Assembly: GCA_950097015.1 (NCBI GenBank)
Contig: CATNEN010000029.1
Coordinates: 5,580,001 to 5,644,000, forward strand
Source of the DNA: Macrostomum hystrix
Lineage: Eukaryota > Animalia > Platyhelminthes
Length of the DNA: 64,000 nt
Direction of reading: 5' to 3'
Positions 20,425 to 51,039 of the stretch are shown piece by piece. The notes under the pieces were generated by a model. The model made no database searches. It was not told the origin of the DNA and saw nothing but the letters and a program-made list of their open reading frames with translations. A program made the position numbers and the translations under genes. Numbering within the stretch: position 1 is the stretch's first letter; each line of letters starts with the position of its first letter.

Positions 20425-23400
20425 CTAGCAAGTTTTGCCCCCCTTCGGGGAGCAGAAATATTTTTAACTCGTCCAGTATATACTTTTTAGCAGCTGTATT
20501 GTCAGCCTTTTTTGCGCTACAATGATCAGTTGACAATGATCCCCCAGTTGAGAATGATCCCCCAGTTGACAATGATCCCCCAGTTAATAATGATCCCCCA
20601 GTTGACAATGATCCCCCAGTTGACAATGATCCCCCAGTTGACAATGATCCCCCAGTTGATAATGATCACCCAGTTGACAATGATCCCCCAGTTGACAATG
20701 ATCCCCCAGTTGACAATGATCCCCCAGTTGACAATGATCTCCCAGTTGACAATGATCCACCAGTTGACAATGATCCCCCAGTTGACAATGATCCCACAGT
20801 TGACAATGATCCCCCAGTTGATAATGATCACCCAGTTGACATTGATCCTCCAGTTGACAATGATCCCCCAGTTGACAATGATCCCCCAGTTGACAATGAT
20901 CTCCCAGTTGACAATGATCCACCAGTTGACAATGATCCCCCAGTTCACAATGATCCCCAGTTGGCCATGATCCCCTAGTTGACAATGATCCCACAGTTGA
21001 CAATGATCCCCCAGTTTACAATGATCCCCCAGTTGATGATGATTCCCCAGTTTACAATGATCTCCCAGTTGACAATGATCCCCCAGTTGACAATGTTCCC
21101 CCAGTTGACAATGATCCCCCAGTTCACAATGATCCCCAGTTGGCCATGATCCCCTAGTTGACAATGATCCCACAGTTGACAATGATCCCCCAGTTTACAA
21201 TGATCCCCCAGTTGATGATGATTCCCCAGTTTACAATGATCTCCCAGTTGACAATGATCCCCCAGTTGACAATGTTCCCCCAGTTGACAATGATCCCCCA
21301 GTTCACAATGATCCCCAGTTGGCCATGATCCCCTAGTTGACAATGATCCCACAGTTGACAATGATCCCCCAGTTTACAATGATCCCCCAGTTGATGATGA
21401 TTCCCCAGTTAACAATGATCTCCCAGTTGAAAATGATCCCCCAGTTTACAATGATCCCCCAGTTGACAATGATCCCCCAGTTGACAATGATCCCCCAGTT
21501 GACAATGATCCCCCAGTTGACAATGATTACCCAGTTGACAATGATTACCCAGTTGACAATCATTCCCCAGTGGACAATGATCCCCCAGTTTACAATGATA
21601 CCCCAGTTGACAATGATCACCCAGTTGAAGATGATCCCCCGGTTGACAATGATCACCCAGTTCACAATGATCCCCAGTTGGCCATGATCCCCTAGTTGAC
21701 AATGATCCCACAGTTGACAATGATCCCCCAGTTGATGATGATCCCCCAGTTTACAATGATCTCCCAGTTGACAATGATCCCCCAGTTGAAGATGATCCCC
21801 CAGTTGACAATGATCACCCAGTTCACAATGATCCCCAGTTGGCCATGATCCCCTAGTTGACAATGATCCTACAGTTGACAATGATCCCCCAGTTGACAAT
21901 GATCCCCCAGTTGATGATGATCCCCCAGTTTACAGTGATCTCCCAGTTGACAATGATCCCCCAGTTGAAGATGATCCCCCAGTTGACAATGATCACCCAG
22001 TTCACAATGATCCCCAGTTGGCCATGATCCCCTAGTTGACAATGATCCTACAGTTGACAATGATCCCCCAGTTGACAATGATCCCCCAGTTGATGATGAT
22101 CCCCCAGTTTACAGTGATCTCCCAGTTGACAATGATCCCCCAGTTGAAGATGATCCCCCAGTTGACAATGATCACCCAGTTCACAATGATCCCCAGTTGG
22201 CCATGATCCCCTAGTTGACAATGATCCTACAGTTGACAATGATCCCCCAGTTGACAATGATCCCCCAGTTGACATGATTACCCAGTTGACAATCATTCCC
22301 CAGTGGACAATGATCCCCTAGTTGACAATGATCCCCCAGTTGAAAATGATACCCCAGTTGACAATGATCCCCCAGTTGACGATGATCCCCCAGTTGACAA
22401 TGATCCCCCAATTGACAATGATCCCCCAGTTGACAATGATCCCCCAGTTGACAATGATCCCCCAGTTGACAATTATCCCCCAGTTTACCATGATCCCCCA
22501 GTTGACGATTATCCCCCAGTTCACCATGATCCCCATTTTGATGATGACTCCCCAGTTGACGTTGATTTTTCAAACACTGGGTTAGCCAAGATTCAAACTC
22601 AGGTTTCGCCATGTTTTAAACCCTGGTGGGCTATGATTCAAACTCTCGTTTTGCCATGATTCAGACTCTGGTTGGCTATGATTCAAACTCTGGTTTAGCC
22701 AAGATTCAAACTCTGGTTTAGCCATGTTTTAAACCCTGGTGGGCTATGATTCAAACTCTCGTTTTGCCATGATTCAGACTCTAGTTTAGCCATGATTCAG
22801 ACTCTGGTTTTGCCATGATTCAAGCTCTGGTTTAGCCATGTTTCAAACTCTGGTTTAGCCATGATTCAAACTCTGGTTTAGCCATGATTCAGACTCTGGT
22901 TTAGCCATGATTCAGACTCTGGTTTAGCCATGATTCAGACGCTGGTTTAGCCATGGTTCAGACTCTGGTTTAGCCATGATTCAAACTCTGGTTTAGCCAT
23001 GATTCAGACGCTGGTTTAGCCATGATTCAGACGCTGGTTTAGCCATGATTGAAACTCTGGTTTAGCCATGATTCAGACTCTGGTTTAGCCATGATTTAAA
23101 CTCTGGTTTAGCCATGATTCAGACTCTGGTTTAGCCATGGTTCAAACTCTGGTTTAGCCATGATTCAGACGCTGGTTTAGCCATGATTCAGACTCTGGTT
23201 TAGCCATGATTCAAACTCTGGTTAAGCCATGATTCAGACTCTGGTTTCGCCATGTTTTAAACCCTGGTGGGCTATGATTCAAACTCTCGTTTTGCCATGA
23301 TTCAGACTCTGGTTTAGCCATGATTCAGACTCTGGTTTTGCCATGATTCAAGCTCTGGTTTAGCCATGTTTCAAACTCTGGTTTAGCCATGATTCAAACT

Positions 23401-25340
23401 CTGGTTTAGCCATGATTCAGACTCTGGTTTAGCCATGATTCAGACTCTGGTTTAGCCATGATTCAGACGCTGGTTTAGCCATGATTCAGACTCTGGTTTA
23501 GCCATGATTCAAACTCTGGTTTAGCCATGATTCAGACGCTGGTTTAGCCATGATTCAGACGCTGGTTTAGCCATGATTGAAACTCTGGTTTAGCCATGAT
23601 TCAGACTCTGGTTTAGCCATGGTTCAAACTCTGGTTTAGCCATGATTCAGACGCTGGTTTAGCCATGATTCAGACTCTGGTTTAGCCATGAATCAAACTC
23701 TGGTTAAGCCATGATTCAGACTCTGGTTTCGCCATGTTTTAAACCCTGGTGGGCTATGATTCAAACTCTCGTTTTGCCATGATTCAGACTCTGGTTGGCT
23801 ATGATTCAAACTCAGGTTTCGCCATGTTTTAAACCCTGGTGGGCTATGATTCAAACTCTCGTTTTGCCATGATTCAGACTCTGGTTGGCTATGATTCAAA
23901 CTCTGGTTTAGCCAAGATTCAAACTCTGGTTTAGCCATGTTTTAAACCCTGGTGGGCTATGATTCAAACTCTCGTTTTGCCATGATTCAGACTCTGGTTT
24001 AGCCATGATTCAGACTCTGGTTTTGCCATGATTCAAGCTCTGGTTTAGCCATGTTTCAAACTCTGGTTTAGCCATGATTCAAACTCTGGTTTAGCCATGA
24101 TTCAGACTCTGGTTTAGCCATGATTCAGACTCTGGTTTAGCCATGATTCAGACGCTGGTTTAGCCATGATTCAGACTCTGGTTTAGCCATGATTCAAACT
24201 CTGGTTTAGCCATGATTCAGACGCTGGTTTAGCCATGATTGAAACTCTGGTTTAGCCATGATTCAGACTCTGGTTTAGCCATGATTTAAACTCTGGTTTA
24301 GCCATGATTCAGACTCTGGTTTAGCCATGGTTCAAACTCTGGTTTAGCCATGATTCAGACGCTGGTTTAGCCATGATTCAAACTCTGGTTTAGCCATGAT
24401 TCAGACTCTGGTTTAGCCATGATTCAGACTCTGGTTTAGCCATGATTGAGACGCTGGTTTAGCCATGATTCAGACTCTGGTTTAGCCATGATTCAAACTC
24501 TGGTTTAGCCATGAATTAGACGCTGGTTTAGCCATGATTCAGACGCTGGTTTAGCCATGATTGAAACTCTGGTTTAGCCATGATTCAGACTCTGGTTTAG
24601 CCATGATTTAAACTCTGGTTTAGCCATGATTCAGACTCTGGTTTAGCCATGATTCAAACTCTGGTTTAGCCATGATTCAGACGCTGGTTTAGCCATGATT
24701 CAAACTCTGGTTTAGCCATGATTCAAACTCAGATTTGCTATGATTTATGATATTTTATTTACGAAATATAAAAAATAATATAAAATAATCTTCAATCACT
24801 ACTGGCTGAAAATTAGTCTAAATGATTTGACCCAGTGCAGAATCGAACCCTAGCCTAGCCTAACCTATTCCTAGTGCCTACACATCGGCTATTCCGACTG
24901 TTGGTTAGTGGGTGCAAAAATCTGCCTTATAAAATGAATTCTCAAAGTTCTGGCTTTGTACAATGAAGTAAGAAAATAGAGTACACTCAGTCTCGCAGTT
25001 GGTTGTGTACATTTATTTCAAATTTGTCTCCAGAGTGCAGGCTTCAAATTCAATCAGCTAGGGGTTGTTGCGCAATTTGACGATGCAATTCTAATTCAGT
25101 GGCTGTCAGTGAAATTCTCAATAGGCCAAGATGGTTTGACCTTTAAAAAATCATGTTTTTCGAATATTTAATCCCCTTAGCAATAAAGTTAAGCTTAATA
25201 AAAATACGTGTATAATTCTCCCCATATTTAGCATCTTTTGGTGAAGAAATTGTGAAAATCGGTTGAGCTGTTCGGGAGAAAATCAATTACAACCAACCAA
25301 CCAACCAAGCAAGCAAGCATTTCATTTTTAGTATAGTGGA
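20425..25340 (-). mobile_element. Non-autonomous Helitron unit NA1 (4.9 kb, satellite-filled)
   Basis: Minus strand: 5' TCCACTATAC start. 3' hairpin TGCTCCCC-GAA-GGGGGGCA, 7 nt, then CTAG followed by target T. Interior has an 18-bp array (~20522-22560) and a 23-bp array (~22580-24735). Confidence 0.9.
20522..22560. repeat. 18-bp satellite (AGTTGACAATGATCCCCC)n; further arrays at ~25436-25975 and ~30720-33270
   Basis: Visible tandem arrays. Source of the MIPQLT/VDNDPP/GDHCQL pseudo-ORFs. Confidence 0.97.
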
Positions 25341-28300
25341 CTAGCAAGTTTTGCCCCCCTTCGGGGAGCAGAAATATTTTTAATTCGTCCAGTATACACT
25401 TTTTAGCAGCTGCATTTTCAGCCTTTTTACGCTACAATGATCAGTTGACAATGATCCCCCAGTTGATAAAGATCCCCCAGTTGACAATGATCCCCCAGTT
25501 GACAATGATCCCCCAGTTGATAAAGATCCCCCAGTTGACAATGATCCCCCAGTTGACAATGATCCCCCAGTTGATAAAGATCCCCCAGTTGACAATGATC
25601 CCCCAGTTGACAATGATCCCCCAGTTGACAATGATCCCACAGTTGACAAAGATCCCCCAGTTCACAATGATCCCCCAGTTGATGATGATCCCCCAGTTGA
25701 TGATGATCCCCAGTTGATGATGATCACCGAGTTGACAATGATCCCCAAGTTGACCATGATCCCCCATTTGATGATGATTCCCCAGTTGACCATTACCCCC
25801 TAGTTGACAATGATCCCTCAGTTCACAATGATCCCCCAGTTGACAATGATCCCCCAGTTGACAATGATCCCCCAGTTGACAATTATCCCCCCAGTTTACC
25901 AAGATCCTCCAGTTGATGATTATCCCCCAGTTTACCTTGATCCCCATTTTGAGGATGACTCCACAGTTGACGTTGATTTTTCAAACGCTGGTTTTGCCAT
26001 GATTCAGACTCTGGTGTAGCAATGATTCAAACTCTGGTTTAGCCATGATTCAGACTCTGGTTTAGCCATGATTCAAACTCTGGTTTAGCCATGATTCAAA
26101 CTCTGGTTTAGCCATGATTCAAACGCTGGTTTAACCATGATTCAAACTCTGGTTTAGCCATGATTCAAACGCTGGTTTAACCATGATTCAAACTCTGTTT
26201 TAGCCATGATTTAAACTCTGGTGTAGCCATGATTCAGACGCTGGTTTAGCCATGATTCAAACTCTGGTTAGCTATGATTCAAACTCTGGTTTCGCCTTGA
26301 TTCAAATTTAGCCATGATTCAGACTCTGGTGTAGCCATGATTCAGACTCTGGTGTAGCAATGATTCAGACTCTGTTTTAGCCATGATTCAGACTCTGGTT
26401 TAGCTATGATTCAAACTCTGGTTTAGCCATGATTCAGACTCTGGTGTAGCCATGATTCAGACTCTGGTTTAGCCATGATTCAGACTCTAGTTTAGCCATG
26501 ATTCAGACTCTGGTTTAGCCATGATCCAGACTCTGGTGTAGCAATGATTCAGACTCTGGTTTAGCCATGATTCAGACTCTGGTTTAGCCATGATTCAGAC
26601 TCTGGTTTAGCCATGATTCAAACTCTGGTTTAGCCATGATTCAGACTCTAGTTTAGCCATGATTCAGACTCTGGTTTAGCCATGATCCAGACTCTGGTGT
26701 AGCAATGATTCAGACTCTGGTTTAGCCATGATTCAGACTCTGGTTTAGCCATGATTCAGACTCTGGTTTAGCCATGATTCAAACTCTGGTTTAGCCATGA
26801 TTCAAGCGCTGGTTTAACCATGATTCAAAATCTGGTTTAGTCATGATTAAAACTCTGATTTTGCCATGATTCAAACTCTGGTTTAGCCATGATTCAAACT
26901 CTGGTTGGCCATGATTCAAACTCTGGTTTAGCCATGATTCAAACGCTGGTTTAACCATGATTCAAAATCTGGTTTAGTCATGATTAAAACTCTGATTTTG
27001 CCATGATTCAAACTCTGGTTTAGCCATGATTCAAACTCTGGTTGGCCATGATTCAAACTCTGGTTTAGCCATGATTCAAACGCTGGTTTAACCATGATTC
27101 AAACTCTGTTTTAGCCATGATTTAAACTCTGGTGTAGCCATGATTCAGACGCTGGTTTAGCCATGATTCAAACTCTGGTTAGCTATGATTCAAACTCTGG
27201 TTTCGCCTTGATTCAAATTTAGCCATGATTCAGACTCTGGTGTAGCCATGATTCAGACTCTGGTGTAGCAATGATTCAGACTCTGTTTTAGCCATGATTC
27301 AAACTCTGGTTTAGCTATGATTCAAACTCTGGTTTAGCCATGATTCAGACTCTGGTGTAGCCATGATTCAGACTCTGGTGTAGCCATGATTCAGACTCTA
27401 GTTTAGCCATGATTCAGACTCTGGTTTAGCCATGATCCAGACTCTGGTGTAGCAATGATTCAGACTCTGGTTTAGCCATGATTCAGACTCTGGTTTAGCT
27501 ATGATTCAAACTCTGGTTTAGCCATGATTCAGACTCTGGTTTAGCCATGATTCAGACTCTGGTTTAGCCATGATTCAAACTCTGGTTTAGCCATGATTCA
27601 GACTCTGGTTTAGCCATGATTCAAACTCTGGTTTAGCCATGATTCAAACTCTGGTTTAGCCATGATTCAAACGCTGGTTTAACCATGATTCAAAATCTGG
27701 TTTAGTCATGATTAAAACTCTGATTTTGCCATGATTCAAACTCTGGTTTAGCCATGATTCAAACTCTGGTTGGCCATGATTCAAACTCTGGTTTAGCCAT
27801 GATTCAAACGCTGGTTTAACCATGATTCAAACTCTGTTTTAGCCATGATTTAAACTCTGGTGTAGCCATGATTCAGACGCTGGTTTAGCCATGATTCAAA
27901 CTCTGGTTAGCTATGATTCAAACTCTGGTTTCGCCTTGATTCAAATTTAGCCATGATTCAGACTCTGGTGTAGCCATGATTCAGACTCTGGTGTAGCAAT
28001 GATTCAGACTCTGTTTTAGCCATGATTCAGACTCTGGTTTAGCTATGATTCAAACTCTGGTTTAGCCATGATTCAGACTCTGGTGTAGCCATGATTCAGA
28101 CTCTGGTTTAGCCATGATTCAGACTCTAGTTTAGCCATGATTCAGACTCTGGTTTAGCCATGATCCAGACTCTGGTGTAGCAATGATTCAGACTCTGGTT
28201 TAGCCATGATTCAGACTCTGGTTTAGCCATGATTCAGACTCTGGTTTAGCCATGATTCAAACTCTGGTTTAGCCATGATTCAAACGCTGGTTTAACCATG

Positions 28301-30624
28301 ATTCAAAATCTGGTTTAGTCATGATTAAAACTCTGATTTTGCCATGATTCAAACTCTGGTTTAGCCATGATTCAAACTCTGGTTGGCCATGATTCAAACT
28401 CTGGTTTAGCCATGATTCAAACGCTGGTTTAACCATGATTCAAAATCTGGTTTAGTCATGATTAAAACTCTGATTTTGCCATGATTCAAACTCTGGTTTA
28501 GCCATGATTCAAACTCTGGTTGGCCATGATTCAAACTCTGGTTTAGCCATGATTCAAACGCTGGTTTAACCATGATTCAAACTCTGTTTTAGCCATGATT
28601 TAAACTCTGGTGTAGCCATGATTCAGACGCTGGTTTAGCCATGATTCAAACTCTGGTTAGCTATGATTCAAACTCTGGTTTCGCCTTGATTCAAATTTAG
28701 CCATGATTCAGACTCTGGTGTAGCCATGATTCAGACTCTGGTGTAGCAATGATTCAGACTCTGTTTTAGCCATGATTCAAACTCTGGTTTAGCTATGATT
28801 CAAACTCTGGTTTAGCCATGATTCAGACTCTGGTTTAGCCATGATTCAGACTCTGGTTTAGCCATGATTCAAACTCTGGTTGGCCATGATTCAAACTCTG
28901 GTTTAGCCATGATTCAAACGCTGGTTTAACCATGATTCAAAATCTGGTTTAGTCATGATTAAAACTCTGATTTTGCCATGATTCAAACTCTGGTTTAGCC
29001 ATGATTCAAACTCTGGTTGGCCATGATTCAAACTCTGGTTTAGCCATGATTCAAACGCTGGTTTAACCATGATTCAAAATCTGGTTTAGCCATGATTCAA
29101 ACTCTGGTTTAGCCATGATTCAAACTCTGGTTTAGCCATGATTCAGACTCTGGTTTAGCCATGATTCAAACTCTGGTTTAGCCATGATTCAAACGCTGGT
29201 TTAACCATGATTCAAAATCTGGTTTAGTCATGATTAAAACTCTGATTTTGCCATGATTCAAACTCTGGTTTAGCCATGATTCAAACTCTGGTTGGCCATG
29301 ATTCAAACTCTGGTTTAGCCATGATTCAAACGCTGGTTTAACCATGATTCAAACTCTGTTTTAGCCATGATTTAAACTCTGGTGTAGCCATGATTCAGAC
29401 GCTGGTTTAGCCATGATTCAAACTCTGGTTAGCTATGATTCAAACTCTGGTTTCGCCTTGATTCAAATTTAGCCATGATTCAGACTCTGGTGTAGCCATG
29501 ATTCAGACTCTGGTTTAGCCATGATTCAAACTCTGGTTTAGCCATGCTTCAAGCTCTGGCTGAGCCATGATTCAATCGCTGGTTTTTCCATGATTCAGAC
29601 GCTGGTTTAGCCATGATTCAGACACTGGTTTAGCCATAATTTAGACTCTGGTTTAGCCATGATTCAGACGCTGGTTTAGCCATGATTCAGACTCTGGTTT
29701 AGCCATGATTCAAACTCTGGTTTAGCCATGATTCAAACTCTGGTTTAGCCACGATTCAAGCTCTGGTTTAGCCATGATTCAACCTCTGGTTTAGCCATGA
29801 TTCAAACTCTGGTTTAGCCATGATTGAAACTCTGGATTTGCCATGATTCAAACTCTGGTTTAGCCATGATTCAAACTCTGGTTTAGCCATGATTGAAACT
29901 CTGGATTTGCCATGATTCAAACTCTGGTTTAGCCATGATTGAAACTCTGGTTTAGCCACGATTCAAACTCTGGTTTAGCCATGATTCAGACTCTGGTTTA
30001 GACATGATTTAAACTCTATTTTTGCAATGATTCAAACTCAGGTTTGCTATAATTTATGATTTTTATTTATAAAATGAAAAAAATAAATTAAAATAATCTT
30101 CAATCACTACTGGCTGACAATTATTCTAATTGATTTGTCGCAGTGCAGAATCGAACCCTAGCCTGGCCTAACCTATTCCTAGTGCCTACACATAGGCTAT
30201 TCCGACTGTTGGTTAGTGGGTGCAAAAATCTGCCTTATAAAATGAATTCTCAAAGTTCTGGCTTTGTACAATGAAGTGAGAAAATAGAGTACACTCAGTC
30301 TCGCGGTTGGTTGTGTACATTTATTTCAAATTTGTCTCCAGAGTGCAGGCGTCAAATTAAATCAGCTAGGGGTTGTTGCGCAATTTGACGATGCAATTTT
30401 AATTCAGTGGCAGTGAGTGAAATTCTCAATAGGTTTGACCTTTGAAAAACTCATGTTTTTCGAATATTTAATCCCCTTAGCAATAAAGTTAAGCTTAATA
30501 AAAATGCGTGTATAATTGTCCCCATATTTAGCATCTTTTGGTGAAGAAATGGTGAAAATCGGTTGAGCCGTTCGGGAGAAAATCAATTACAACCAACCAA
30601 CCATTTCATTTTTAGTATAGTGGA
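25341..30624 (-). mobile_element. Non-autonomous Helitron unit NA2 (5.3 kb)
   Basis: Same termini, CTAG|TC junctions. 18-bp array ~25436-25975, 23-bp array ~25990-30045. Confidence 0.9.
25990..30045. repeat. 23-bp satellite (ATGATTCAAACTCTGGTTTAGCC)n; further arrays at ~22580-24735, ~33285-35105, ~48300-48720 and inverted at ~44635-44740
   Basis: Visible tandem arrays with recurring variant blocks. Confidence 0.97.
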
Positions 30625-33600
30625 CTAGCAAGATTTGCCCCCCTTCGGGGAGCAGAAATACTTTTAATTCGTCTAGTATAGACTTTTTAGAAGCTGAATT
30701 TACAGCTTTTTAAAGCTACTATGAACCCCCAGTTGACAATGATCCCCCAGTTGACAATGATCCCCCAGTTGACAATGAACCCCCAGTTGACAATGAACCC
30801 CCAGTTGACAATGATCCCCCAGTTGACAAAGATCCCCCAGTTCACAATGATCCCCCAGTTGATGATGATCCCCCAGTTGATGATGATCCCCCAGTTGAGA
30901 ATGATCCCCCAGTTGACAATGATCCCCCAGTTGAGAATGATCCCCCAGTTAACAATGATCCCCCAGTTAACAAAGATCCCCCAATTCACAATGATCCCCC
31001 AGTTGATGAAGTCTCCCTATTGATGATGATCCCCAGTTAACAATGTTCCTCCAGTTGACAATGTTCCCCCAGTTATCAATGATCCCCCAGTTGATGATGA
31101 TCACCCAGTTCACAATGATCCCCCAGTTGACAATGATCCCCCAGTTGACAATGATCCCCCAGTTGACAATGATCCCCCAGTTGATGATGATCCCCCAGTT
31201 GAAAATGATCCCCCAGTTGAGAATGATCCCCCAGTTGACAATGATCCCCCAGTTAACAAAGATCCCCCAGTTCACAATGATCCCCCAGTTGATGAAGTCT
31301 CCCCATTGATGATGATCCCTAGTTAACAATGTTCCTCCAGTTGACAATGTTCCCCCAAATGACAATGATCCCCCAGTTGATGATGATCACCCAGTTGACA
31401 ATGATCCCCCAGTTGACAATGATCCCCCAGTTGACAATGATCCCGCCGGTTGACAATGATCCCACAGTTGACAATGAACCCCCAGTTGACAATGATCCCC
31501 CAGTTGACAATGATCCCACAGTTGACAATGATCCCCCAGTTGACAAAGAACCCCCAGTTCACAATGATCCCCCAGTTGACAATGATCCCCCAGTTGACAA
31601 TGATCCCCCAGTTGATGATGATCCCCCAGTTGAAAATGATCCCCCAGTTGAGAATGATCCCCCAGTTGACAATGATCCCCCAGTTAACAAAGATCCCCCA
31701 GTTCACAATGATCCCCCAGTTGATGAAGTCTCCCCATTGATGATGATCCCTAGTTAACAATGTTCCTCCAGTTGACAATGTTCCCCCAAATGACAATGAT
31801 CCCCCAGTTGATGATGATCACCCAGTTGACAATGATCCCCCAGTTGACAATGATCCCCCAGTTGACAATGATCCCGCCGGTTGACAATGATCCCACAGTT
31901 GACAATGAACCCCCAGTTGACAATGATCCCCCAGTTCACAATGATCACCCAGTTGATGATGATCCCCCAGTTGATGATGATCCCCCAGTTGAAAATGATC
32001 CCCCAGTTGACAATGATCCCCCAGTTGACAATGATCCCACAGTTGACAATGATCCCCCAGTTGACAAAGAACCCCCAGTTCACAATGATCACCCAGTTGA
32101 TGATGATCCCCCAGTTGATGATGATCCCCCAGTTGAAAATGATCCCCCAGTTGACAATGATCCCCCAGTTGACAATGATCCCCCAGTTGACAATGATCCC
32201 CCAGTTAACAAAGATCCCCCAGTTCACAATGATCCCCCAGTTGATGAAGTCTCCCCATTGATGATGATCCCCAGTTAACAATGTTCCTCCATTTGACAAT
32301 GTTCCCCCAGTTGACAATGATCCCCCAGTTGATGATGATCACCCAGTTGACAATGATCCCCCAGTTGACAATGATCCCCCAGTTGACAATGATCCCCCAG
32401 TTGACAATGATCCCCCAGTTGATGATGATTCCCCAGTTGAAAATGATCCCCCAGTTGACAATGATCCCCCAGTTGAGAATGATCCCCCAGTTGACAATGA
32501 TCCCCCAGTTGAGAATGATCCCCGAGTTGACAATGATCCCCCAGTTAACAAAGATCCCCCAGTTCACAATGATCCCCCAGTTGATGAAGTCTCCCCATTG
32601 ATGATGATCCCTAGTTAACAATGTTCCTCCAGTTGACAATGTTCCCCCAGTTGACAATGATCCCCCAGTTGATGATGATCACCCAGTTGACAATGATCCC
32701 CCAGTTGACAATGATCCCCCAGTTGACAATGATCCCGCCGGTTGACAATGATCCCACAGTTGATGATGATCCCCCAGTTGACAATGATCCCCCAGTTGAT
32801 GATGATCCCCCAGTTGACAATGATCCCCCAGTTGACAATGATCGCCCAGTTGACAATGAACCCCCAGTTGACAACGATCCCCCAGTTGACAATGATCCCC
32901 CAGTTGACAATGATCCCCCAGTTGACAATGATCCCACAGTATACAATGATCCCCCAGTTGACAAAGATCCCCCAGTTCACAATGATCCCCCATTTGACAA
33001 TGATCCCCCAGTTCTCAATGATCCCCCAGTTGATGATGCTCCCCAGTTGATGATGATTCCCCAGTTGACAATTATCCCCCAGTTGACCATTACCCCCCAG
33101 TTGACAATGATCTCTCAGTTCACAATGACCCCCCAGTTGACAATGATCCCCCAGTTGACAATGATCCCCCAGTTGACAATGATCCCCCAGTTGACAATGA
33201 TTCCCAGTTTACCATGATCCCCCAGTTCACCATGATCCCCATTTTGATGATGACTCCCCAGTTGACGTTGATTTTTCAAACGCTGGGTTAGCCAAGATTC
33301 AAACTCAGGTTTCGCCATGTTTTAAACCCTGGTGGGCTATGATTCAAACTCTCGTTTTGCCATGATTCAGACTCTGGTTGGCTATGATTCAAACTCTGGT
33401 TTAGCCAAGATTCAAACTCTGGTTTAGCCATGATTCAAACGCTGGGTTAGCCATGATTGAAACTCGGTTTTTGCCATGATTCAAACTCTGGTTTAGCCAT
33501 GATTCAAACGCTGGGTTAGCCATGATTGAAACTCTGGTTTAGCCAAGATTCAAACTCTGGTTGGCTATGATTCAAAGTCTGGTTTAGCCATGATTCAAAC

Positions 33601-38029: not shown

Positions 38030-41003
38030 TCTGTGCATTTAGGATTGGGATCTAAGAGATTCTATGAATTCAGGATTGGGATCTAAGAGATTCTATGAAT
38101 TTAGGATTGGGATCTAAGAGATTCTGTGAATTTAGGATTGGGATTCAAGAGATTCTATGAATTTATGATTGGGATCTAAGAGATTCTATGAATTTAGGAT
38201 TGGGATCTAAGAGATTCTGTGAATTTAGGATTGGGATACAAGAGATTCTATGAATTTATGATTGGGATCTCAGAGATTCTATGAATTTAGGATTGGGATC
38301 TAAGAGATTCTGTGAATTTAGGATTGGGATCTAAGAGATTCTGTGAATTTAGGATTGGGATCTAAGAGATCTCATGAATTTAGGATTGGGATCTAAGAGA
38401 TTCTATGAATTTAGGATTGGGATATAAGAGATTCTATGAATTTAGGATTGGGATATAAGAGATTCTATGAATTTAGGATTGGGATCTAAAAGATTCTGTG
38501 AATTTAGGATTGGGATTCAAGAGATTCTATGAACTTAGGATTGGAATCTAAGAGATTCTGTGAATTTAGCATTGGGATCTAAGAGATTCTGTGAATTTAG
38601 GATTGGGATCTAAGAGATTCTGTGAATTTAGGATTGGGATCTAAGAGATTCTGTGAATTTAGGACTGGGATCTAAGAGATTCTGTGAATTTAGGATTGGG
38701 ATTCAAGAGATTCTATGAACTTAGGATTGGAATCTAAGAGATTCTGTGAATTTAGCATTGGGATCTAAGAGATTCTGTGAATTTAGGATTGGGATCTAAG
38801 AGATTCTGTGAATTTAGGATTGGGATCTAAGAGATTCTGTGAATTTAGGACTGGGATCTAAGAGATTCTGTGAATTTAGGATTGGGATCTAAGAGATTCT
38901 ATGAATTTAGGATTGGGATCTAAGAGATTCTATGAATTTAGGATTGGGATCTAAGAGATTCTGTGAATTTAGGATTGGGATCTAAGAGATTCTATGAATT
39001 TAGGATTGGGATATAAGAGATTCTATGAATTTAGCATTGGGATCTAAGAGATTCTGTGAATTTAGGATTGGGATCTAAGAGATTCTGTGAATTTAGGATT
39101 GGGATCTAAGAGATTCTATGAATTTAGGATTGGGATCTAAGAGATTCAATGAATTTAGGATTGGGATCTAAGAGATTCTGTGAATTTAGGATTGGGATCT
39201 AAGAGATTCAATGAATTTAGGATTGGGATCTAAGAGATTCTATGAGATTAGGATTGGGATCTCAGAGATTCAATGAATTTAGGATTGGGATATAAGAGAT
39301 TCTATGAATTCAGGATTGGGATATAAGAGATTCAATGAATTTAGGATTGGGATCTAAGAGATTCTGTGAATTTAGGATTGGGATCTAAGAGATTCTATGA
39401 ATTTAGCATTGGGATCTAAGAGATTCTGTGAATTTAGGATTGGGATCTAAGAGATTCTATGAATTCAGGATTGGGATATAAGAGATTCAATGAATTTAGG
39501 ATTGGGATCTAAGAGATTCTGTGAATTTAGGATTGGGATCTAAGAGATTCTGTGAATTTAGGATTGGGATCTAAGAGATTCTATGAATTTAGGATTGGGA
39601 TATAAGAGATTCTATGAATTTAGGATTGGGATCTAAAAGATTCTATGAATTTAGGATTGGGATCTAAGAGATTCTGTGAATTTAGGATTGGGATCTAAGA
39701 GATTTTGTGAATTTAGGATTGGGATATAAGAGATTCTATGAATTTAGGATTGGGATATAAGAGATTCTATGAATTTAGGATTGGGATCTAAGAGATTCTA
39801 TGAATTTGGGATTGGGATCTAAGAGATTCTATGAATTTAGGATTGGGATATAAGAGATTCTATGAATTTAGGATTGGGATATAAGAGATTCTATGAATTT
39901 AGGATTGGGATATATCTCTTATATCTCTTGTGAATTTAGAATTGGGATCTAAGAGATTCTGTGAATTTAGGATTGGGATATAAGAGATTCTATGAATTTA
40001 GGATTGGGATCTAAGAGATTCTATGAATTTAGAATTGGGATCTAAGAGATTCTGTGAATTTAGAATTGGGATCTAAGAGATTCTGTGAATTTAGGATTGG
40101 GATATAAGAGATTCTATGAATTTAGGATTGGGATCTAAGAGATTCTATGAATTTAGGATTGGGATATAAGAGATTCTATGAATTTAGCATTGGGATCTAA
40201 GAGATTCTATGAATTTAGGATTGGGATATAAGAGATTCTATGAATTTAGGATTGGGATCTAAGAGATTCTATGAATTTAGCATTGGGATCTAAGAGATTC
40301 TATGAATTTAGGATTGGGATATAAGAGATTCTATGAATTTTGGATTGGGATCTAAGAGATTCTATGAATTTAGGATTGGGATCTAAGATATTCTATGAAT
40401 TTAGCATTGGGATCTAAGAGATTCTATGAATTTAGGATTGGGATATAAGAGATTCTATGAATTTAGGATTGTGATCTAAGAGATTCTGTGAATTTAGGAT
40501 TGGGATCTAAGAGATTCTATGAATTTAGCATTGGGATCTAAGAGATTCTATGAATTTAGGATTGGGATATAAGAGATTCTATGAATTTAGGATTGGGATC
40601 TAAGAGATTCTGTGAATTTAGGATTGGGATCTAAGAGATTCTATGAATTTAGGATCGGGATCTAAGAGATTCTGTGAATTTAGGATTGGGATCTAAGAGA
40701 TTCTGTGAATTTAGGATTGGGATCTAAGAGATTCTATGAATTTAGGATCGGGATCTAAGAGATTCTATGAATTTAGGATTGGGATCTAAGAGATTCTGTG
40801 AATTTAGGATTGGGATCTAAGAGATTCTATGAATTTAGGATCGGGATCTAAGAGATTCTATGAATTTAGGATTGGGATCTAAGAGATTCTGTGAATTTAG
40901 GATTGGGATCTAAGAGATTTTGTGAATTTAGGATTGGGATCTAAGAGATTCTGTGAATTTAGGATTGGGATCTAAGAGATTCTGTGAATTTAGGATTGGG
41001 ATC
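38030..41003. repeat. 31-bp satellite (GAATTTAGGATTGGGATCTAAGAGATTCTAT)n, about 3 kb, inside the autonomous Helitron
   Basis: Visible array. Period counted as 31 (38881 to 38912). Confidence 0.97.
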
Positions 41004-41265
41004 TGTTATGCTCAGTTCTGTTATGCCACAAACACAATTTAGCTAATCATTTTGCCTAGGTAATCCCTTATCTCAATTCCATTATGATCCCATCTAATTT
41101 GAATTTATTAGGTGAATAAAGCAGGATTTGCCTGATATGTCTCAGCGGGCCATTTACATATCAGGATAAACTACTTGTGATCACTATTAAACACAGATAC
41201 CAATGCGACACTCACAGACAAAAATGACACAAGTAATACTCACTTCAATGACGCCTGGAAATCGC

Positions 41266-44200
41266 CTAATCTCCAGTGAGCACTTCTGGATACACCACGT
41301 TCCTGGTCTTGGTTCCGGAAACCCGGACGCGGACATTGGCCGCGTTCTTCGCTCGTGACAGCGCCGTGTACAGCTGACCATGAGTGAAGCAACCGACAGC
41401 CAGGTCAACGCCAACGGTCTCCAGAGACTGGCCTTGTGCTTTGTGTATTGTAAGGCAGAAGCTCGACTTCACAGGAAACTGCAGCCGCTTGAAACTCACT
41501 GGTAGATCCGCATTGTTTGGAATCAGCGGAATTCGCGGCAGCAGGATCTCGTCTCCAGTGAACTGACCGGCGGCAATCTTGCAGCGCAGCACATTATCGC
41601 CCATCGTGAGAACGATGAGCCGTGTACCGTTGCACAGCCGCGGCGGGTTGATGTTCCGAAGAAGCACCAGCGGCATGCCCACCTTGATCCTGAGCAGATA
41701 AGTTGGAAAATTCGGGGCATCCAGCTGGTTTAGCAACTCCGTCGGGAAATGCGTAGCGGCCTCCTCATCAGCCAGGCTGTCTACAGAGCGATACTCTCGC
41801 AGGCAACCCGGGAAAATGCCCAGACACGTCTCGTTGATGGCATCAACAGAGTCGTTGTACGGCGCCAGTATCGCTCGACTTGCAAAATAGTCGTCCCGCT
41901 CCGCTGATTCTTCAAACGACGGGTACACGAACTTGATCAGGTCATTCAGCGGAGCCTCTGCAGAAATCACCATCTCAGCGGGAAGGGACACCTTCTCCTC
42001 AGCATCCTGCTCGATTGTCCCGGTTCCGATCTGTGAAAAGAAAAGCAATAAAAACATGAAACATGATATTCGCAATGATTCGCGAGATTCGAATGATTTT
42101 TACACCCCATTCTCACCTGCATGAGTAGCTCCGTGAACTTCTGGTACATCGCTGGCTCGGAGCTGCACAGCAGACGAATGTTTCTCGTCAAGCGATGTCG
42201 CTTGAAAAGTTTCCACAGCGAAGATCTGCAGACACACGCCATGACGCTGTTGGCGCGGGTTCCATTCACTACGACAGGCAGGAGCTGGCGGAAGTCACCG
42301 GAACACACCAGAGTGACTCCTCCAAATGGCTTGTCCTGCTTCCGAACGTCTCGCAGACACCTGTCCACGGATTCCAGATCCTTTCGATTGGTCATGGAGA
42401 TCTCGTCCCAGACAATCAGCCGAACTCTACGAAACACTTCCGCTTGCTTGGACTGCGCGCCAACAGCGCAGACATCCTTGTTGGATCGGAGCAGCCGGAC
42501 TGGGATCTTGAACCTAGAGTGAAGTTGTCATAGGTAGAATCGATTAGAAACGCGACTCTATAAAATTCAGAAGCATTCCCCTAATCTAAAAAACTTACGT
42601 GGAATGCGCAGTCTGTCCGCCTGGCAGCAGAGTCGCTGCGATTCCAGACGCCGCAACTGCCAGGGCGAGTTCACCGCGGCTGCGCACAAAGGCCAGCAAA
42701 ACCTCCAGCAGGAAGGTCTTGCCAGTGCCAGCGGGCGCGTCCAGGAAGTGCAAACCGCCCGAGCCGGCCACAAGATCCGCAGTCACCGACTCGTACACCG
42801 CAATCTGCTCCTCCGTCAGCATTGACAGTCTCGCTTCCCGGATCTCGGCCTGTTCAACCGGGTCGAACTGCATCGGTCCGACTTGAGGCGGCACGGAGGC
42901 CGCAGGCAAGCCGTACTCGGGCAGGCTGTGACCGCCCATGGAGGTCAGCATGCTCTGCAGCTCGCGCAGCGCCAGGTCGGTGATTTCCTCAGCGCTCAGA
43001 TCTCGGTGGTGAAACCGCAGGTCCTCGCACAGATCCTCGGCGAATGTGCACCACAGATCGCTGCCATCCTCAGGGTTGCCCCAAATCAGAATGACAGCCA
43101 GCAGGTGCCTGAGAGCTCTCGGCATTCGCGACTGGACTGCCTCGGCTAGGCAGCGCCGCCAGTGGTCGTCTCGTTGCAGCAGACCCAGGGCCGTGCAAGC
43201 AGCCTTGGCGCTGGGACACAGCACTCCGTCCACAGTGTGCAGCGCCTCGAAGCTGGTTGGCCCTCTAACCTGCAGGAGGAGCATTCGCATATAAAACAGA
43301 TCCCCTGCTCTCGGACTCACCGTGTACATTCGGGCAATGTTCGTGTTGTGCACAACACCAGGGTGGCCCTCAACTCTCGAACCCTTCTTGGCGCGGCGCC
43401 ACTCCCTCTCGCTGTGGTGCCACACGAAGTAGGACGGCACCTCGGTGTACACCAGGCCTCTAGCGAATTCATCAGTGCGGCACAGCTTGAAGAAAGCCGT
43501 CAGCGTCGAATCTCTGGGCGCCCTGGCCTTTGTGCTCGCATTTTGCTCGTTGAAATACACGAGCTGCTCGTTAGACTTGTGCACGCACAATCGGATCACA
43601 GCCGGAAATCTGTTGTGCACCTGTTGTGTTTTAGTTTAAAAACCATATCATTATTTTCCCATTCTTTGCTCCTAGCACTGCCTTGCAAACATCTATGACT
43701 TACTTCAAAGCCCAAGATGGTATTCACGGCTTCCATTGGGCCTATGTAGCGCGCCAGCAGATACTCCTTGATCTCATTTCGCCCCTCCTTCTTGGCTTGA
43801 GTCGGAGCCTTGCTAGCTGAACCTTCCTGTCGTTCGCCATCCGCAGCCTGCTCTCCTGGCCCGCTCGGCTTCTTGTTTGCCTCGAACTTGAACGACGCCA
43901 TGTCGCCGCCTTTTAGCAAGTACTTGATCACGTACTTGACCGACTTGACGGTGGCACAAACTTCAAAGTTCATGTGGCATTCGAAAAGGAGCAACAGGCC
44001 CGGGTTGTATGGTACAACCCACCTTTATTTGTGCCAGGAAAAGAATTGCTAGTTAATGATTCATGTATTCTAGCAATGGTAAATTAACCTTAAAGTAAAT
44101 AAACAATTTAGTAACTAAACTAAACACAAGCCTAAACTAAGTGCTTTGCTTTCATATTAAAGAATCAACCTTTCAATCAAGTCTGAAAAAACACCAACAC

Positions 44201-47200
44201 CTCCTCACTCACCTGTTGTCCATGCGAATGCTGCGGCCTTTGAATAGTTTGTCCACCGTAAATCCGCCCATCTCAGGGGACAGCCTGCGATACAATGGGT
44301 AGCCAGTATCGCTGGTTAGAGTCGCCTGCTGGAACTCCTTCGGGAAGCCCTTGCTGCACTGGCCGTCCACCATGCACGGGCAGGCTGGATTTACCACGCC
44401 GCAGGGGCCATGGATCATGTGAGTCTTCACCAGCTCGTGCAGCCTCGGCTGCTGCTGTGGGTCCGGAATCTCGGCGGACACAATTTTGTCGTAGCGGTCC
44501 GGAGTCACTCTCTGTCCACTGACCAGCCAGAGCAGAAAGTGCACATGGGGGAGACCTGCGGAAGACATAAATAAATAAGTGATTCAAAGCGACGTATGAG
44601 TGATCCCAATTTAGTCATGTATTAATTAAAATTCTAAACCAGAGTTTGAATCATGGCTAAACCAGAGTTTGAATCATGGCTAAACCAGAGTTTGAATCAT
44701 GGCTAAACCAGAGTTTGAATCATGGCTAAACCAGAGCTTAATTCCAGTTTGCAATGACCCCTTGCATTAAAATATGGATTGCTAAACCCGGAATGCAATT
44801 ACAGAATGAAAATTGAAAGCGCAAATTGCTAACTTACCGCGCTTCTGATATTCCAGAGAGCAAACATGCGCGGCCTCCTTTCCAAAGCGCTTCCTCAGCT
44901 CGGTAAGCAGAGCTTTCTTCTTCAGCTCGAAAACGCGCGTGACAATATCCGGCCGGTCCTCAGGTCGCTGTCCAGGCAGCAGCTGTGCGCTGATTTCCGG
45001 CCACTTAGGGTTGCACGTCGCCGTGACAAACAGGTCCGGCTTGCCAAACTTTTGTACATAGGTCATGGCGTCTTGCAGCCTCTCCATCAGGTACCTTGGC
45101 CCGCCAACGAAGCTGGAGGACAGGAACACGTGCGCAGGCTTGCCAATATCAGTCGGATTTGTGTCGGTCGACCTGCCATCAGCAGCGAATAGAGCGTCTC
45201 GCAGACCGCTGTACGTCTCACTGCGCAGATCGCTCTGATGGGTCCGCAGATAGAGCAGCCTCTCTGACTCAATCTTGGCGCACATGTCCACCAGGTACTG
45301 CTGGAACAGCCTCCGTCCGTGGTGCAGCAAGCTGCTCTGGCCCGCTCGCACCATGATTTCGCTGGCATAGTACTTCATCGGCGTCAGCTTGCGGCCATTG
45401 CTCATGCGCAGCTCCGGGTGCCAGCCGTCCTCGCCATAGGGGAACAGCAACACGTACTCCAGTGCATCATACGATCGGTGTGTTTTGCTAATCCTCTTGT
45501 AGCCGCCACCCCGCAGTTGAATGACAACATCTCGGCTAGTTGCTGGCTCATCACCGTCTTCAGGGGCCTCAGTGTCCTCAGTGTCCTTAACAATGAGGAT
45601 GCCGACCTCGTTTGCCGTGGGCAAATTGTAGCGCCTGATTTTGAACGGTAGTAACAAATGCTTTTAACAAAACTCTTTACAACGGTAAACATTTCTGTGT
45701 ACACAGGCACAAAGCTTTAAAAGACAGGTTTTTAAATGTGTTTCAATCCCTTTTCAGTTATTCTTAGCTCACCGAATGTGTTCCCCAGAAGGTCTTCGGT
45801 CCGGGTGAATCACGATTCGCGCATCCACAAGCTCCGGATCCTCCATGATCCGCTGTGCTGCAGCCTTCAGGCTCCGAACGTAAAGGTTGCACTCGTGAAG
45901 CAACGTCTGTAGCAGCTCCTGTAGCTCTGGCTTCACCCTATCGCTCAGACTCTGCTGGCTTTCGAGTTCGCGGTCAGTGAAGTACACCTGCCAGCCGCGA
46001 GGAACAGCAGACGCTTCAGCAAACAGCGGCATAGCAGTGTGGTGCAGCTGACCGCTGATGATGTAGCTGGGATTCCAGCCTGGCACCAACCGCGGCTTGG
46101 CACTCAGCGAGGTCAGGTGCAGCACAGAGTTATAGCTCCGGATGTTGGTCAGGAACTCTGAGCTCATGCTGTGCCGGCCAATGTACAGGTCAGCCAGCAG
46201 CTGTGGCACAGTCCGGGTGGGCAGCTTCACCTTGCCTCCAGCACAGCAGAAATTGCCTGTCTCCATGCGGAACAGCTTGGCACCGCAATGGTTGCATGCC
46301 CAGTCCATTGGCCCGCAGTCATGGGCTGGAGCTTCTGGCCTCGCCATCGTCTCAGGCCTGATAATAAAAATGGAATGTATCTCTTAGTAACTGTTAAATG
46401 TAAATGTAACTGTTAATTATGTGTCACTTTACCTTGCAGTAGCGGGTCCGTCTTCAGCGCGGCCCGCAGTCTCATGTTCCGCCGGCATCGCGCTGGGGCC
46501 CTTGGCTTTCTTGGCCCTCTTGGCAGGAGTTCTGCTTGCTGCCAGGCTCGGGAACTCAGCATCTGTAAAGGCTTGCAAAGGCTCTCGAAGTCTCAGTGAC
46601 TCGTAATGTTCATGGCGCAAAAGCACACGCACAATGGCATTAGGAGGGCGCAAATTAGCCCTGAAATATTGCATCACACTACCATTGGCCTGGTAAATGA
46701 CCAGATCCACATCAAAGCAGCGGCTCAACAAAGAGGCAACTTCATCTGAAACATAAATTCCTGCTTGAAAAGAGGAATTCACGATCTCATCAGCACTCTC
46801 AGGTGCAATGAGGCCATCTGCAATCAGCTGTGGCATGAGTTCTGCAACACGGCAAGACAAGTCCTGCCGCAGGGAGGCTGCGTCAGTTTCCAGCGGGGTT
46901 CCACGCAGCTGATCACACACAGCATAAAAAAAGCAATTGCCATCACCAACAATGGGGATTACCTGCAACTGCTTAAAGGGTACAATAGTTTCTGTACCTT
47001 GCTGCTGGGTGTCCGACCTAAGGGGCAATGGGTGAACGTAAGCACAGCAGCCTTAATTGGCTTTTTAAGACAATTCATTCCTCAAAAATCGTTATCCGCT
47101 TAATTTATACAGAATAAAATAGATACTACAAATTATCCCCTTCAAGGCAATTCAGAAAAAAACAAAAATAAAGACTTGTTATAAAAAGTTACTATACAAC

Positions 47201-47752
47201 TCACCTAGAAACCACAGCTCCACGGCGACGAATCCGATCGGCTTCCAGTCGGGCAGCCCACTCTGCCTCAGTCTCAGCCTCTCTGCGCTGAGCGTCCCGC
47301 TGCCGCTGTTCTTCCAGTCGGGCAGCCCACTCTGCCTCAGTCTCAGCATGTCTGCACTGAGCATTCCGCTGCCGCTGTTCTTCCAGTCGGGCAGCCCGCT
47401 CTGCCTCAGTCTCAGCATGTCTGCACTGAGCATTCCGCTGCCGCTGTTCTTCCAGTCGGGCAGCCCGCTCTGCCTCAGTCTCAGCATGTCTGCACTGAGC
47501 ATTCCGCTGCCGCTGTTCTTCCAGTCGGGCAGCCCGCTCTGCCTCAGTCTCAGCATGTCTGCACTGAGCATTCCGCTGCCGCTGTTCTTCCAGTCGGGCA
47601 GCCCGCTCAGCCTCAGTCTCAGCATGTCTGCGCTGAGCATCCCGCTGCCGCTGTTCTTCCAGTCGGGCAGCCCGCTCTTCCTCGGATTCTGCCTGTCGCC
47701 GTCGCTTGGCATCGCGGCTCTTCTTTAAACTGCTGGCGCCGCGTCGAACCAT
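41266..47752 (-). CDS. Helitron RepHel transposase (STPR-like repeats, OTU protease, Zn finger, HUH Rep, PIF1-type SF1 helicase); 9 exons, 1786 aa
   Basis: Exons 47752-47205, 47017-46433, 46357-45773, 45634-44838, 44555-44213, 44022-43704, 43620-42599, 42513-42117, 42030-41266. All introns are GT-AG and in phase, total 5361 nt. Motifs: GDGNCFF...HYESL; CNHCGA...CCAGG; GEHIRRYNLPTANEV; DLFVTATCNP; EYQKRGLPHVH; KYVIKYLLKG; APAGTGKT; TAHSTFKIP; WDEISM; GDFRQLLPV; TIHKAQGQS; GQLYTALSR. Confidence 0.93.
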
Positions 47753-49316
47753 GATTGAGAAATGAGAAGCGAAATGAAATAGTTGAGAAAGAATGATATG
47801 GTTTGAAAGATGAAAGTTTGTGAATTTGGATGTCTGAAGAATCAGATAAGGCGCCCTTTAGCCGAACTAATTTGCAGGCTATTTATCATCCAGTGGGTTG
47901 AATTGGAGCTTATCTTAAGACGCAGGGTAAAAACTGAAAAATCGATAAAGAAATAGGGGTCTAAATCTAAAAAACCTATGATTTGGGGCTCTCCAGGCCC
48001 GTGCGTCCACATTCCGGGGCAGAGGGCTCACAGTGTACACTGGTCTGCGCCAGCCAATGAGAAAAGTTGTGATGTAATCTATTTATAAATTCGCACAGAC
48101 TGTCTCGCCAGTGGGGTTGACACAGTTATGTACATTTGACACACTGAAATTCTTATCAGTGTTATAACCAGTATCACTGATTGACACACTGAAATTCTTA
48201 TCAGTGTTATAACCAGTATCACTGATATCAGTGATATCATCAATGTCAGTGATAATCAGTCTCACTTTTAACAAAATTGGCTTTGGAAAACTGGTTTTGC
48301 CATTATTCAAACTCTGGTTTAGCCTTGATTCAAATTCAAACTCTGGTTTAGCCTTGATTCAAACTCCGGTTTAGCCTTGATTCAAACTCGGGTTTAGCCA
48401 TGATTCAAACTCTGGTTTAGCCATAATTCAAACGCTGGAATAGCCATGATTGAAACTCGGGTTTAGCCATGATTCAAGCTCTGGTTTAGCCATGATTCAG
48501 ACTCTGGTTTAGGCATGATTCAAACTCTGGTTTAGCCATGATTCAGACTCCAGTTTTGCCATGATTCAGACTCTGGTTTAGCCATGATTCAGACTCTGGT
48601 TTAGCCATGATTCAGACTCTGGTTTAGCCATGATTCAAACTCTGGTTTAGCCATGATTCAGACTATGGTTTAGCCATGATTCAAACTCAGGTTTGCTATG
48701 ACAAACTCAGGTTTGCTATGATTTATGATATTTTATTTACGAAATGAAAAAATAAATTAAAATAATCTTCAATCACTACTGGCTGAAAATTAGTCTAAAT
48801 GATTTGACGCAGTGCAGAATCGAACCCTAGCCTAGCCTATAACCTATTCCTAGTGCCTACACATCGGCTATTCCGACTGTTGGTTAGTGGGTGCAAAAAT
48901 CAGCCTTATAAAATGAATTCTCAAAGTTCTGGCTTTGTACAATGAAGTAAGAAAATAGAGTGCACTCAGTCTCGCGGTTGGTTGTGTACATTTATTTCCA
49001 ATTTGTCTCCAGAGTGCAGGCTTCAAATTCAATCAGCTAGGGGTTGTTGCGCAATTTGACGACGCAATTCTAATTCAGTGGCTGTCAGTGAAATTCTCAA
49101 TAGGCCAAGATGGTTTGACCTTTGAAAAAATCATGTTTTTCGAATATTTAATCCCTTTAGCAATAAAGTTAAGCTTAATAAAAATACGTGTATAATTGTC
49201 CCCATATTTAGCATCTTTTGTTGAAGAAATGGTGAAAATCGGTTGAGCCGTTCGGGAGAAAATCAATTACAAGCAACCAACCAACCAACCAAGCATTTCA
49301 TTTTTAGTATAGTGGA

Positions 49317-51039
49317 CTAGCTGCCTTCGCTACCCTCTGGGTAGCCTCCCTGTGAGTTCTTATCAGTACGCGCGTGCGTTATCAAAACTGGCTCTGATGC
49401 AATCATTAAATTTGGCACTGGAGGCCTCACTGTGCACAAGCTGAAAACAAGAATGCATTAGAAAAGCCTATTTAAAACAGTTTTTCGAATATTTAATCCC
49501 CTTGCCAATGGAATTAAGCTTAATAAAATTACGTGTACCGATTCCGGCCCATTTGTGATCTTTTGGCGAAGGAATTGCGAAAATCGGTTGAGCCGTTCGG
49601 GAGCTAGTCGATTGCAAACATACAAACATACAAACAAGATTTTCATTTTTAGTATATTACTAGCTGCCTTCGCTACCCTCTGGGTAGCCTCCCTGTGAGT
49701 TCTTATCAGTACGCGCGTGCGTTATCAAAACTGGCTCTGATGCAATCATTAAAATTGGCACTGGAGGCCTCACTGTGCACAAGCTGAAAACAAGAATGCA
49801 TTTGAAAAGCCTATTTAAAACTGTTTTTCGAATATTTAATCCCCTTGGCAATGGAATTAAGCTTAATAAAAATACGTGTACCGATTCCGGCCCATTTGTG
49901 ATCTTTTGGCGAAGGAATTGCGAAAATCGGTTGAGCCGTTCGGGAGCTAGTCGATTGCAAACATACAAGCAAGCAAGATTTTCATTTTTAGTATATTAGA
50001 CTAGCTGCCTTCGCTACCCTCTGGGTAGCCTCACTGGAGTTCTTATCAGTTCGTTATCAAAACTGGCTCTGATGCAATCATTAAAATTGGCACTGGAGCC
50101 TCACTGCGCACAAGCTGAAAACAAGAATGCATTAGAAAAGCCTATTTGAAACAGTTTTTCGAATATTTAATCCCCTTGGCAATGGAATTAAGCTTAATAA
50201 AAATACGTGTACCGATTCCGGCCTATTTGTGATCTTTTGGTGAAGGAATTGTGAAAATCGGTTGAGCCGTTCGGGAGCTAGTCGATTGCAAACATACAAG
50301 CAAGCAAGCAAGATTTTCATTTTTAGTATATTAGAAGATAGACTAGCTGCCTTCGCTACCCTCTGGGTAGCCTCACTGGAGTTCTTATCAGTTCGTTATC
50401 AAAACTGGCTCTGATGCAATCATAAAAATTGGCACTGGAGCCTCACTGTGCACAAGCTGAAAACAAGAATGCATTAGAAAAGCCTATTTAAAACTGTTTT
50501 TCGAATATTTAATCCCCTTGGCAATGGAATTAAGCTTAATAAAAATACGTGTATAGTTGTCCCCATATTTGGCATCTTTTGGTGAAGAAATGGTGAAAAT
50601 TGGTTGAGCCGTTCGGGAGAAAATCAATTACGAACAAGCAAGCAAGATTTTCATTTTTAGTATATTAGACTAGCTGCCTTCGCTACCCTCTGGGTAGCCT
50701 CACTGGAGTTCTTATCAGTTCGTTATCAAAACTGGCTCTGATGCAATCATTAAAGTTGGCACTAGAGGCCTCACTGTGCACAAGCTGAAAACAAGAATGC
50801 ATTAGAAAAGCCTATTTAAAACTGTTTTTCGAATATTTAATCCCCTTGGCAATGGAATTAAGCTTAATAAAAATACGTGTACCGATTCCGGCCTATTTGT
50901 GATCTTTTGGCGAAGGAATTGTGAAAATCGGTTGAGCCGTTCGGGAGCTAGTCGATTGCAAACATACAAGCAAGCAAGCAAGCAAGATTTTCATTTTTAG
51001 TATATTAGACAAGATTTTCATTTTTAGTATATTAGAAGA
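49317..51039 (-). mobile_element. Five tandem mini-Helitrons (49317-49659, 49660-50000, 50001-50342, 50343-50669, 50670-51039)
   Basis: Each has a 3' hairpin GCTACCC-AGA-GGGTAGC, 8 nt, then CTAG. The 5' half is homologous to the large family (CTCCCGAACGGCTCAACCGATTTT, TTAAGCTTAA). The array ends at target A|TC (51040). Confidence 0.88.

Follow-up and report, generated by a model that had tools for sequence, protein, structure and literature searches.

Introduction

Helitrons of the Helitron1 group (HLE1) are defined by their termini together with the domains of their transposase (PMC11417382), and both tandem Helitrons and 5' self-insertion have already been published in other organisms. The tandem Helitrons of bats, of maize and rice centromeres, of Drosophila and of Xenopus are cited as rolling-circle products (PMC5876387, PMC12001565, PMC11934779). 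In the case of the Fusarium FoHeli elements, the occurrence of several short 5' termini has been put down to near-5' self-insertion followed by mobilization from the outer tip (PMC5148889). Helraiser cleaves its own LTS and the RTS-LTS junction precisely in vitro (PMC4778049; PMC5876387), favors AT-rich DNA 3' of its insertion and can end at CTTG, an alternative terminator (PMC4778049). In addition, copies of its own origin serve the HUH relaxase TrwC as integration sites (PMC3264647). Taken together, Helraiser cleavage and the TrwC precedent make it chemically plausible that the tip of a resident element could supply the nick for integration. We found no paper on LTS- or origin-targeted integration by a Helitron transposase, and none on Helitron trains in Macrostomum, whose genome consists to 15% of simple and tandem repeats (PMC5730564).

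Results

Nine Helitron units occupy a single insertion site

The DNA that we analyzed is a 64-kb stretch (hereafter the window) in which an earlier note had described nine Helitrons joined head to tail. Minus-strand reading of the ten borders recovered every one of them, and also the target A (51040) and T (20424) said to enclose the block, with no target duplication of 1-15 nt at the outer flanks. The train and its units are as follows.

20425-51039, minus strand: full extent of the nine-unit Helitron1 train within one A^T site, delimited by border reading, flanks and joint pattern
50670-51039, minus strand: U1, family B mini, 370 bp, with extra 5' stubs
50343-50669, minus strand: U2, family B mini, 327 bp, mosaic
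50001-50342, minus strand: U3, family B mini, 342 bp, with TCTA+TCT preceding the normal tip at 50335
49660-50000, minus strand: U4, family B mini, 341 bp, sister of U5 by a common 8-bp insertion
49317-49659, minus strand: U5, family B mini, 343 bp, without the initial TC
35700-49316, minus strand: U6, autonomous family A Helitron, 13,617 bp
30625-35699, minus strand: U7, non-autonomous, family A
25341-30624, minus strand: U8, non-autonomous, family A
20425-25340, minus strand: U9, non-autonomous, family A

Orientation is identical for all nine units. Their composition is as had been described, with five minis in family B and, in family A, one autonomous RepHel element plus three derivatives filled with satellite (4.9-5.3 kb in length). 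The proposed three size classes are better given as two terminator families, A and B, that come in three architectures (mini, autonomous and satellite-filled), which also indicates that the train is not the concatemer of one donor. All nine units end in a hairpin with a 7-8-bp GC stem followed by CTAG (fold z -1.8 to -2.9), and 8 of the 9 begin with 5'-TC, the exception being U5. The first 170 bp are common to all units at ~80% identity between families, while a head of ~590 bp is common to U6 and U7-U9 at 91-96% identity, these four all carrying terminator A. A motif count across the window gave 10 heads, 4 A-terminators and 5 B-terminators, all within the block, so that this head and terminator scan of 64 kb revealed no solo copies of families A or B outside of it. 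The head motif was likewise absent from the metagenome contigs in which it was sought, and the NCBI comparison locus contained a distant Helitron family with no copy of the family A or B ends.

Regarding the joints, six of the eight are exact CTAG|TC-head junctions, a pattern that shuffled sequence produced 0 times in 100, and the remaining two (50342/3 and 49659/60) are scarred. At 50342/3, 7 extra nt (TCTA+TCT) precede the head. The joint at 49659/60 lacks TC as had been noticed, and reads CTAG|TAAT. Using termini and domains as the basis of assignment, we place the units in HLE1. Features of Helentron/HLE2 elements were not observed, as the longest inverted match between the ends is 4-7 nt, which leaves no subterminal inverted repeats, and the insertion site is A^T and not T^T.

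Several other features are present in the window. An intact-looking Tc1/mariner-type transposase ORF (DDE_3, HTH; 18138-19220, plus strand) lies 1.2 kb from the 3' border of the train. A 367-aa intronless ORF with hydrophobic stretches and cysteine pairs (51367-52470, plus strand), for which Pfam gave no match and two large protein searches gave no homologue, lies 330 bp from its 5' border. Further away are a last exon that is rich in His and Pro and based on a 27-bp repeat (PPPPNCGPL; 56214-56783, plus strand), for which a protein search gave no homologue, and reverse transcriptase domain halves on opposite strands (57008-59137, minus; 59302-60381, plus), as in an inverted LINE. There is also a GPCR-like (7tm_1/Srw) coding sequence at 7681-8683 (plus strand) that occupies two frames and is split near 8300 by a small intron, a frameshift or an assembly error.

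The autonomous unit U6 and its RepHel gene

The features of U6 are given below.

41266-47752, minus strand: RepHel gene, 9 exons, 5,361 nt, 1,786 codons plus stop
47752-47205, 47017-46433, 46357-45773, 45634-44838 and 44555-44213, minus strand: RepHel exons 1-5
44022-43704, 43620-42599, 42513-42117 and 42030-41266, minus strand: RepHel exons 6-9
48291-48723, minus strand: 23-bp minisatellite in the 5' region, ~19 copies, with the monomer found in U7-U9
37388-41004, minus strand: 22/44-bp and 31-bp minisatellite arrays in the 3' region

An exon-by-exon check of the RepHel reading showed that all 8 introns are GT-AG with consistent phases and that there are zero internal stops. The predicted product contains a charged repeat, an OTU-like domain with a weak match (E 0.13), a Cys-rich motif, Helitron_like_N, HUH (PHVH) and YxxxY motifs that are read in exons 5 and 6, and a Pif1 helicase. 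Domain searches, in which the exons were queried singly, returned Pfam matches to PF14214 (Helitron_like_N, E 2e-46), PF05970 (PIF1, E 7e-33) and PF21530 (Pif1_2B), and no match in any RepHel exon to an AP endonuclease domain, which is optional among Helentron/HLE2 elements. One helicase exon matches two Macrostomum lignano UniRef entries at 100% identity over 224 aa, and on this basis M. lignano is the most probable host. Judged solely by the tip that they have in common, the RepHel of U6 would mobilize the family B minis as well.

Comparison with a relative that bears an RPA gene detected no RPA domain in U6. That related element, from Logan runs and with 82% protein identity, has an RPA-like OB gene 3' of the helicase (L002 6293-6835), an A-type terminator at the 3' end of L002 with no recognizable head after it, and a B-type head segment (L003 100-225). 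Note also that RepHel intron 4 holds 4.5 perfect copies of the 23-bp satellite (44634-44736), inverted relative to the arrays of the element's 5' region.

Minisatellites fill the non-autonomous family A units

Short-period satellite accounts for ~57% of the block, and each of the three long non-autonomous units is arranged (minus strand) as a head, two arrays and a terminator.

30625-35699, minus strand: U7, 590-bp head, 80 copies of a 23-mer (33275-35110), 142 copies of an 18-mer (30721-33266), terminator A
25341-30624, minus strand: U8, head, ~177 copies of the 23-mer (25978-30045), 28 copies of the 18-mer (25442-25945), terminator A
20425-25340, minus strand: U9, head, ~95 copies of the 23-mer (22569-24745), 113 copies of the 18-mer (20527-22560), terminator A

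The 23-mers of U8 form a distinct sub-lineage. When compared by eye, a core like GGATCATTG..AAC is common to the 23-, 22- and 18-bp monomers, and because of this common core the three monomers probably descend from one unit. Outside of the train there are two related 20-bp arrays (12034-12584 and 52486-52952) with a common ATGGGATC core that is reminiscent of the Helitron arrays. No Helitron heads of families A or B were present near these two arrays.

Scars at the 5' tips

U1 has extra bases at its 5' end.

51010-51039, minus strand: U1 stubs, consisting of TCT followed by 27 nt that duplicate the tip exactly, with a TC start and a CTTG end

All extra 5' bases of the stubs are prefixes of the element tip, and neither the TCT nor the 27-nt stub has a remnant element of its own at this locus, a point against the explanation that we favor below. 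The U3 stub (TCTA) and the start of U5 (TAAT) are complementary pieces with a 2-nt overlap (TA), as if U3-U4 had inserted inside the tip of U5. Overall, the scars are consistent with landing at, or slightly inside, resident 5' tips, and the outer-tip mobilization model from Fusarium matches the stubs of this train. For the stubs of U1 and U3, re-initiation in place by Rep is also compatible.

Relationships among the units

We compared the units with each other along their heads, arrays and tails. The A heads differ by 14-26 substitutions in ~545 nt between units and contain incompatible splits, with U6 and U9 being closest in the head while U8 and U9 share a tail. The distal 23-mers of U7 and U9 have 10 variants in common relative to 3-4 with U8. 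U2 is a mosaic.

50537-50631, minus strand: A-family tract of 95 nt within U2

This tract has 2-6 differences to the A heads as opposed to 18-22 to the other minis. The A-family tract of U2 and the conflicting affinities of heads, middles and tails thus show that homologous exchange has acted to reshape the units.

Nearest relatives are twice parted by another sub-type. Specifically, U1 and U3 have a TCT-extended tip in common and differ at 6 of 331 nt, yet U2 lies between them, and U7 and U9 are separated by U8. U4 and U5 are adjacent sisters, and U2 and U3 partly conform to such a neighbor pattern in that they have a 1-nt deletion in common. The U4/U5 adjacency and the U2/U3 deletion are what local duplication or conversion predicts, which counts against the explanation that we favor below. 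Some minis may therefore be local duplicates, and nine separate insertions are not required. The unit order is nonetheless not a simple expansion of one pair. Crossover of one ancestral pair, named in the earlier note as one outcome that would overturn its reading, is hard to reconcile with a B|A joint that lacks a chimeric tip and with sisters interrupted by other subfamilies. The same note expected younger units towards 51 kb. The private substitution rate does rise from U1 to U9 (rho 0.86), on 1-14 private changes per unit and in what is mainly a contrast of minis with long units, so that the trend is confounded by family and the age gradient is weak evidence for the order of addition.

Proposed insertion at resident tips

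An A|TC border had been proposed to act as an A^T landing pad, but A^T by itself is insufficient. The block offers 5,629 A^T site-orientations, and for 349 of these the DNA downstream is AT-rich, of the kind that Helraiser favors (PMC4778049). None of the 5,629 has been used inside units, and no unit interrupts the body of another. Given that AT is palindromic and abundant, A^T alone cannot explain the precision and the uniform orientation of the joints, and the unused sites together with the single orientation indicate that the end itself must be recognized sequence-specifically. We considered a 3' flank that mimics the element's own tip and rejected it, as an equally good score was reached by 34 of the 317 A^T sites that are AT-rich.

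At U5|U6 a B tail meets an A tip, and tip type agrees with body type on both sides. Homologous integration of a circle between families would leave a unit whose tip and body disagree. The absence of such a mismatch indicates that U5|U6 was not made by homologous recombination in the common head, and homologous circle integration is ruled out for this B|A joint. Thus, at least one joint needs a non-homologous, transposase-type end-to-end strand transfer at a resident end, with U5|U6 being the only one that strictly requires a non-homologous event. In precision the heterologous joints match the homologous ones. Serial self-targeted insertion, as envisaged in the earlier note, gains from U5|U6 and from the scars. 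Units need not have been added strictly at the outer 5' border, and internal G^TC joints may also be usable as targets.

On balance we favor, by a modest degree of belief, transposase-guided insertion at resident tips followed by later homologous reshuffling as the origin of the train at this one locus. The RepHel transposase would bind and nick the 5' tip of a resident element, which is its own replication origin, and this nick would serve as the integration target. The incoming 5'-TC would be joined to the upstream 3'-OH and the incoming CTAG to the resident's T, and such strand joining would yield an exact CTAG|TC joint in the same orientation while regenerating the target. Where the nick falls a few bases into the tip, TC-less joints and 5' stubs would result. 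Within an existing train, conversion and unequal crossover would mix, and probably duplicate, some units, and the internal minisatellites would expand.

A less likely account, to which we would give about one chance in several, is that most joints arose by rolling-circle or in-place Rep duplication and by homologous integration of double-stranded circles through the common head, with trans-targeted insertion being rare. If Rep duplicated an element in place, it would join the newly made strand to the 5'-TC that had been displaced. This account draws on the fact that U1's 27-nt stub with its CTTG end reproduces the beginning of the adjacent tip exactly, that U2 shows recombination between A and B heads, and that U6|U7, U7|U8 and U8|U9 are flanked by the common 590-bp heads at 91-96%; Helraiser circles with exact CTAG|TC joints also exist (PMC5876387; PMC4778049). 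However, it would need a tip/body mismatch at U5|U6 that is not seen, it leaves the TC-less joint unexplained, and neighbors are often not closest relatives.

We think it rather improbable that the train began with a few chance double insertions at a strongly preferred AT-rich site and grew through unequal crossover, as McGurk and Barbash documented for other transposons in Drosophila (10.1101/158386). The insertion site and the tips are indeed AT-rich (15-18 of 20 nt), the units lie in family blocks (BBBBB AAAA) and U4/U5 are adjacent sisters. On the other hand, ~4 independent founding joints would be needed, all base-precise and in the same orientation in the face of 349 equally AT-rich site-orientations, the order U7-U8-U9 is not the product of one crossover of a pair, and scars would not arise by crossover, which leaves joints as they are.

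Still harder to credit is that the train, or much of it, was built elsewhere and moved here as one composite from the first TC to the last CTAG by terminator bypass. Such a composite would be expected to have canonical outer ends in one A^T site, as the train does, and bats provide a precedent for end bypass (PMC4224331), but eight intact terminators would have to be bypassed over 30.6 kb and the origin of the joints would merely be shifted to another place. Finally, an assembly artefact that joined dispersed copies is very unlikely, as the region, although repeat-rich, has zero gaps, its units differ by 2-5%, and its joints coincide exactly with biological termini and do not lie within common repeats.

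Discussion

Tandem Helitrons are usually read as rolling-circle concatemers, and a train that is both mixed and base-precise calls for a different route, which would be targeting of resident ends by the transposase. A broader proposal, which we offer tentatively and hold to be somewhat short of probable, is that the Macrostomum Helitron transposase is a self-homing integrase with resident 5' tips, those of related families included, as its preferred target. If so, polar cassette-like arrays would record the order of insertion, and a considerable part of the minisatellite DNA of the genome would be accounted for. Such a system would also be a case of origin-directed HUH integration in a eukaryote. 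It would offer a transposon a safe haven, and it would lead directly from transposons to satellite blocks of large size. The mechanism can be tested, as the flatworm is ready for transgenesis and carries an intact RepHel, and a targetable Helitron would be of use in genome engineering.

In comparison to known systems, the units of this train resemble HLE1 elements of the Helibat1/Helraiser type in having 5'-TC, a hairpin plus CTAG-3', an A^T site without target site duplication, no subterminal inverted repeats, and a RepHel with HUH/Y2 and Pif1. An OTU domain upstream of RepHel has been reported in HLE1 (PMC11417382), to which the OTU-like match observed here is a weak counterpart. They differ from HLE1 in that all nine copies are in one train, that the gene has 8 introns, and that RPA was not detected in U6. 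As in the arrays of bats, maize, rice, Drosophila and Xenopus, to the extent that the cited papers describe them, whole elements are arranged head to tail. Those arrays are cited there as copies of one donor, whereas here two terminator families and three architectures are mixed with equal precision. The Fusarium oxysporum FoHeli elements show insertion 2 bp from the 5' end of another copy, multiple short 5' termini and a self-insertion model (PMC5148889); they differ in being non-canonical (HLE2-type) and in forming isolated cases with no long mixed trains. Oyster Helentrons/HINEs and Drosophila DINE-TR1 are likewise non-autonomous rolling-circle elements whose internal arrays feed satellite DNA (PMC12692304), but they are mostly HLE2-type and dispersed, while the HLE1 units of this train form a 30-kb stack. 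A functional parallel for the proposed mechanism is TrwC and oriT, where an HUH enzyme integrates the incoming DNA at its own nick site, of which a copy is already resident (PMC3264647), an activity shown experimentally in bacterial conjugation and suggested here, by analogy, from the sequence of the train.
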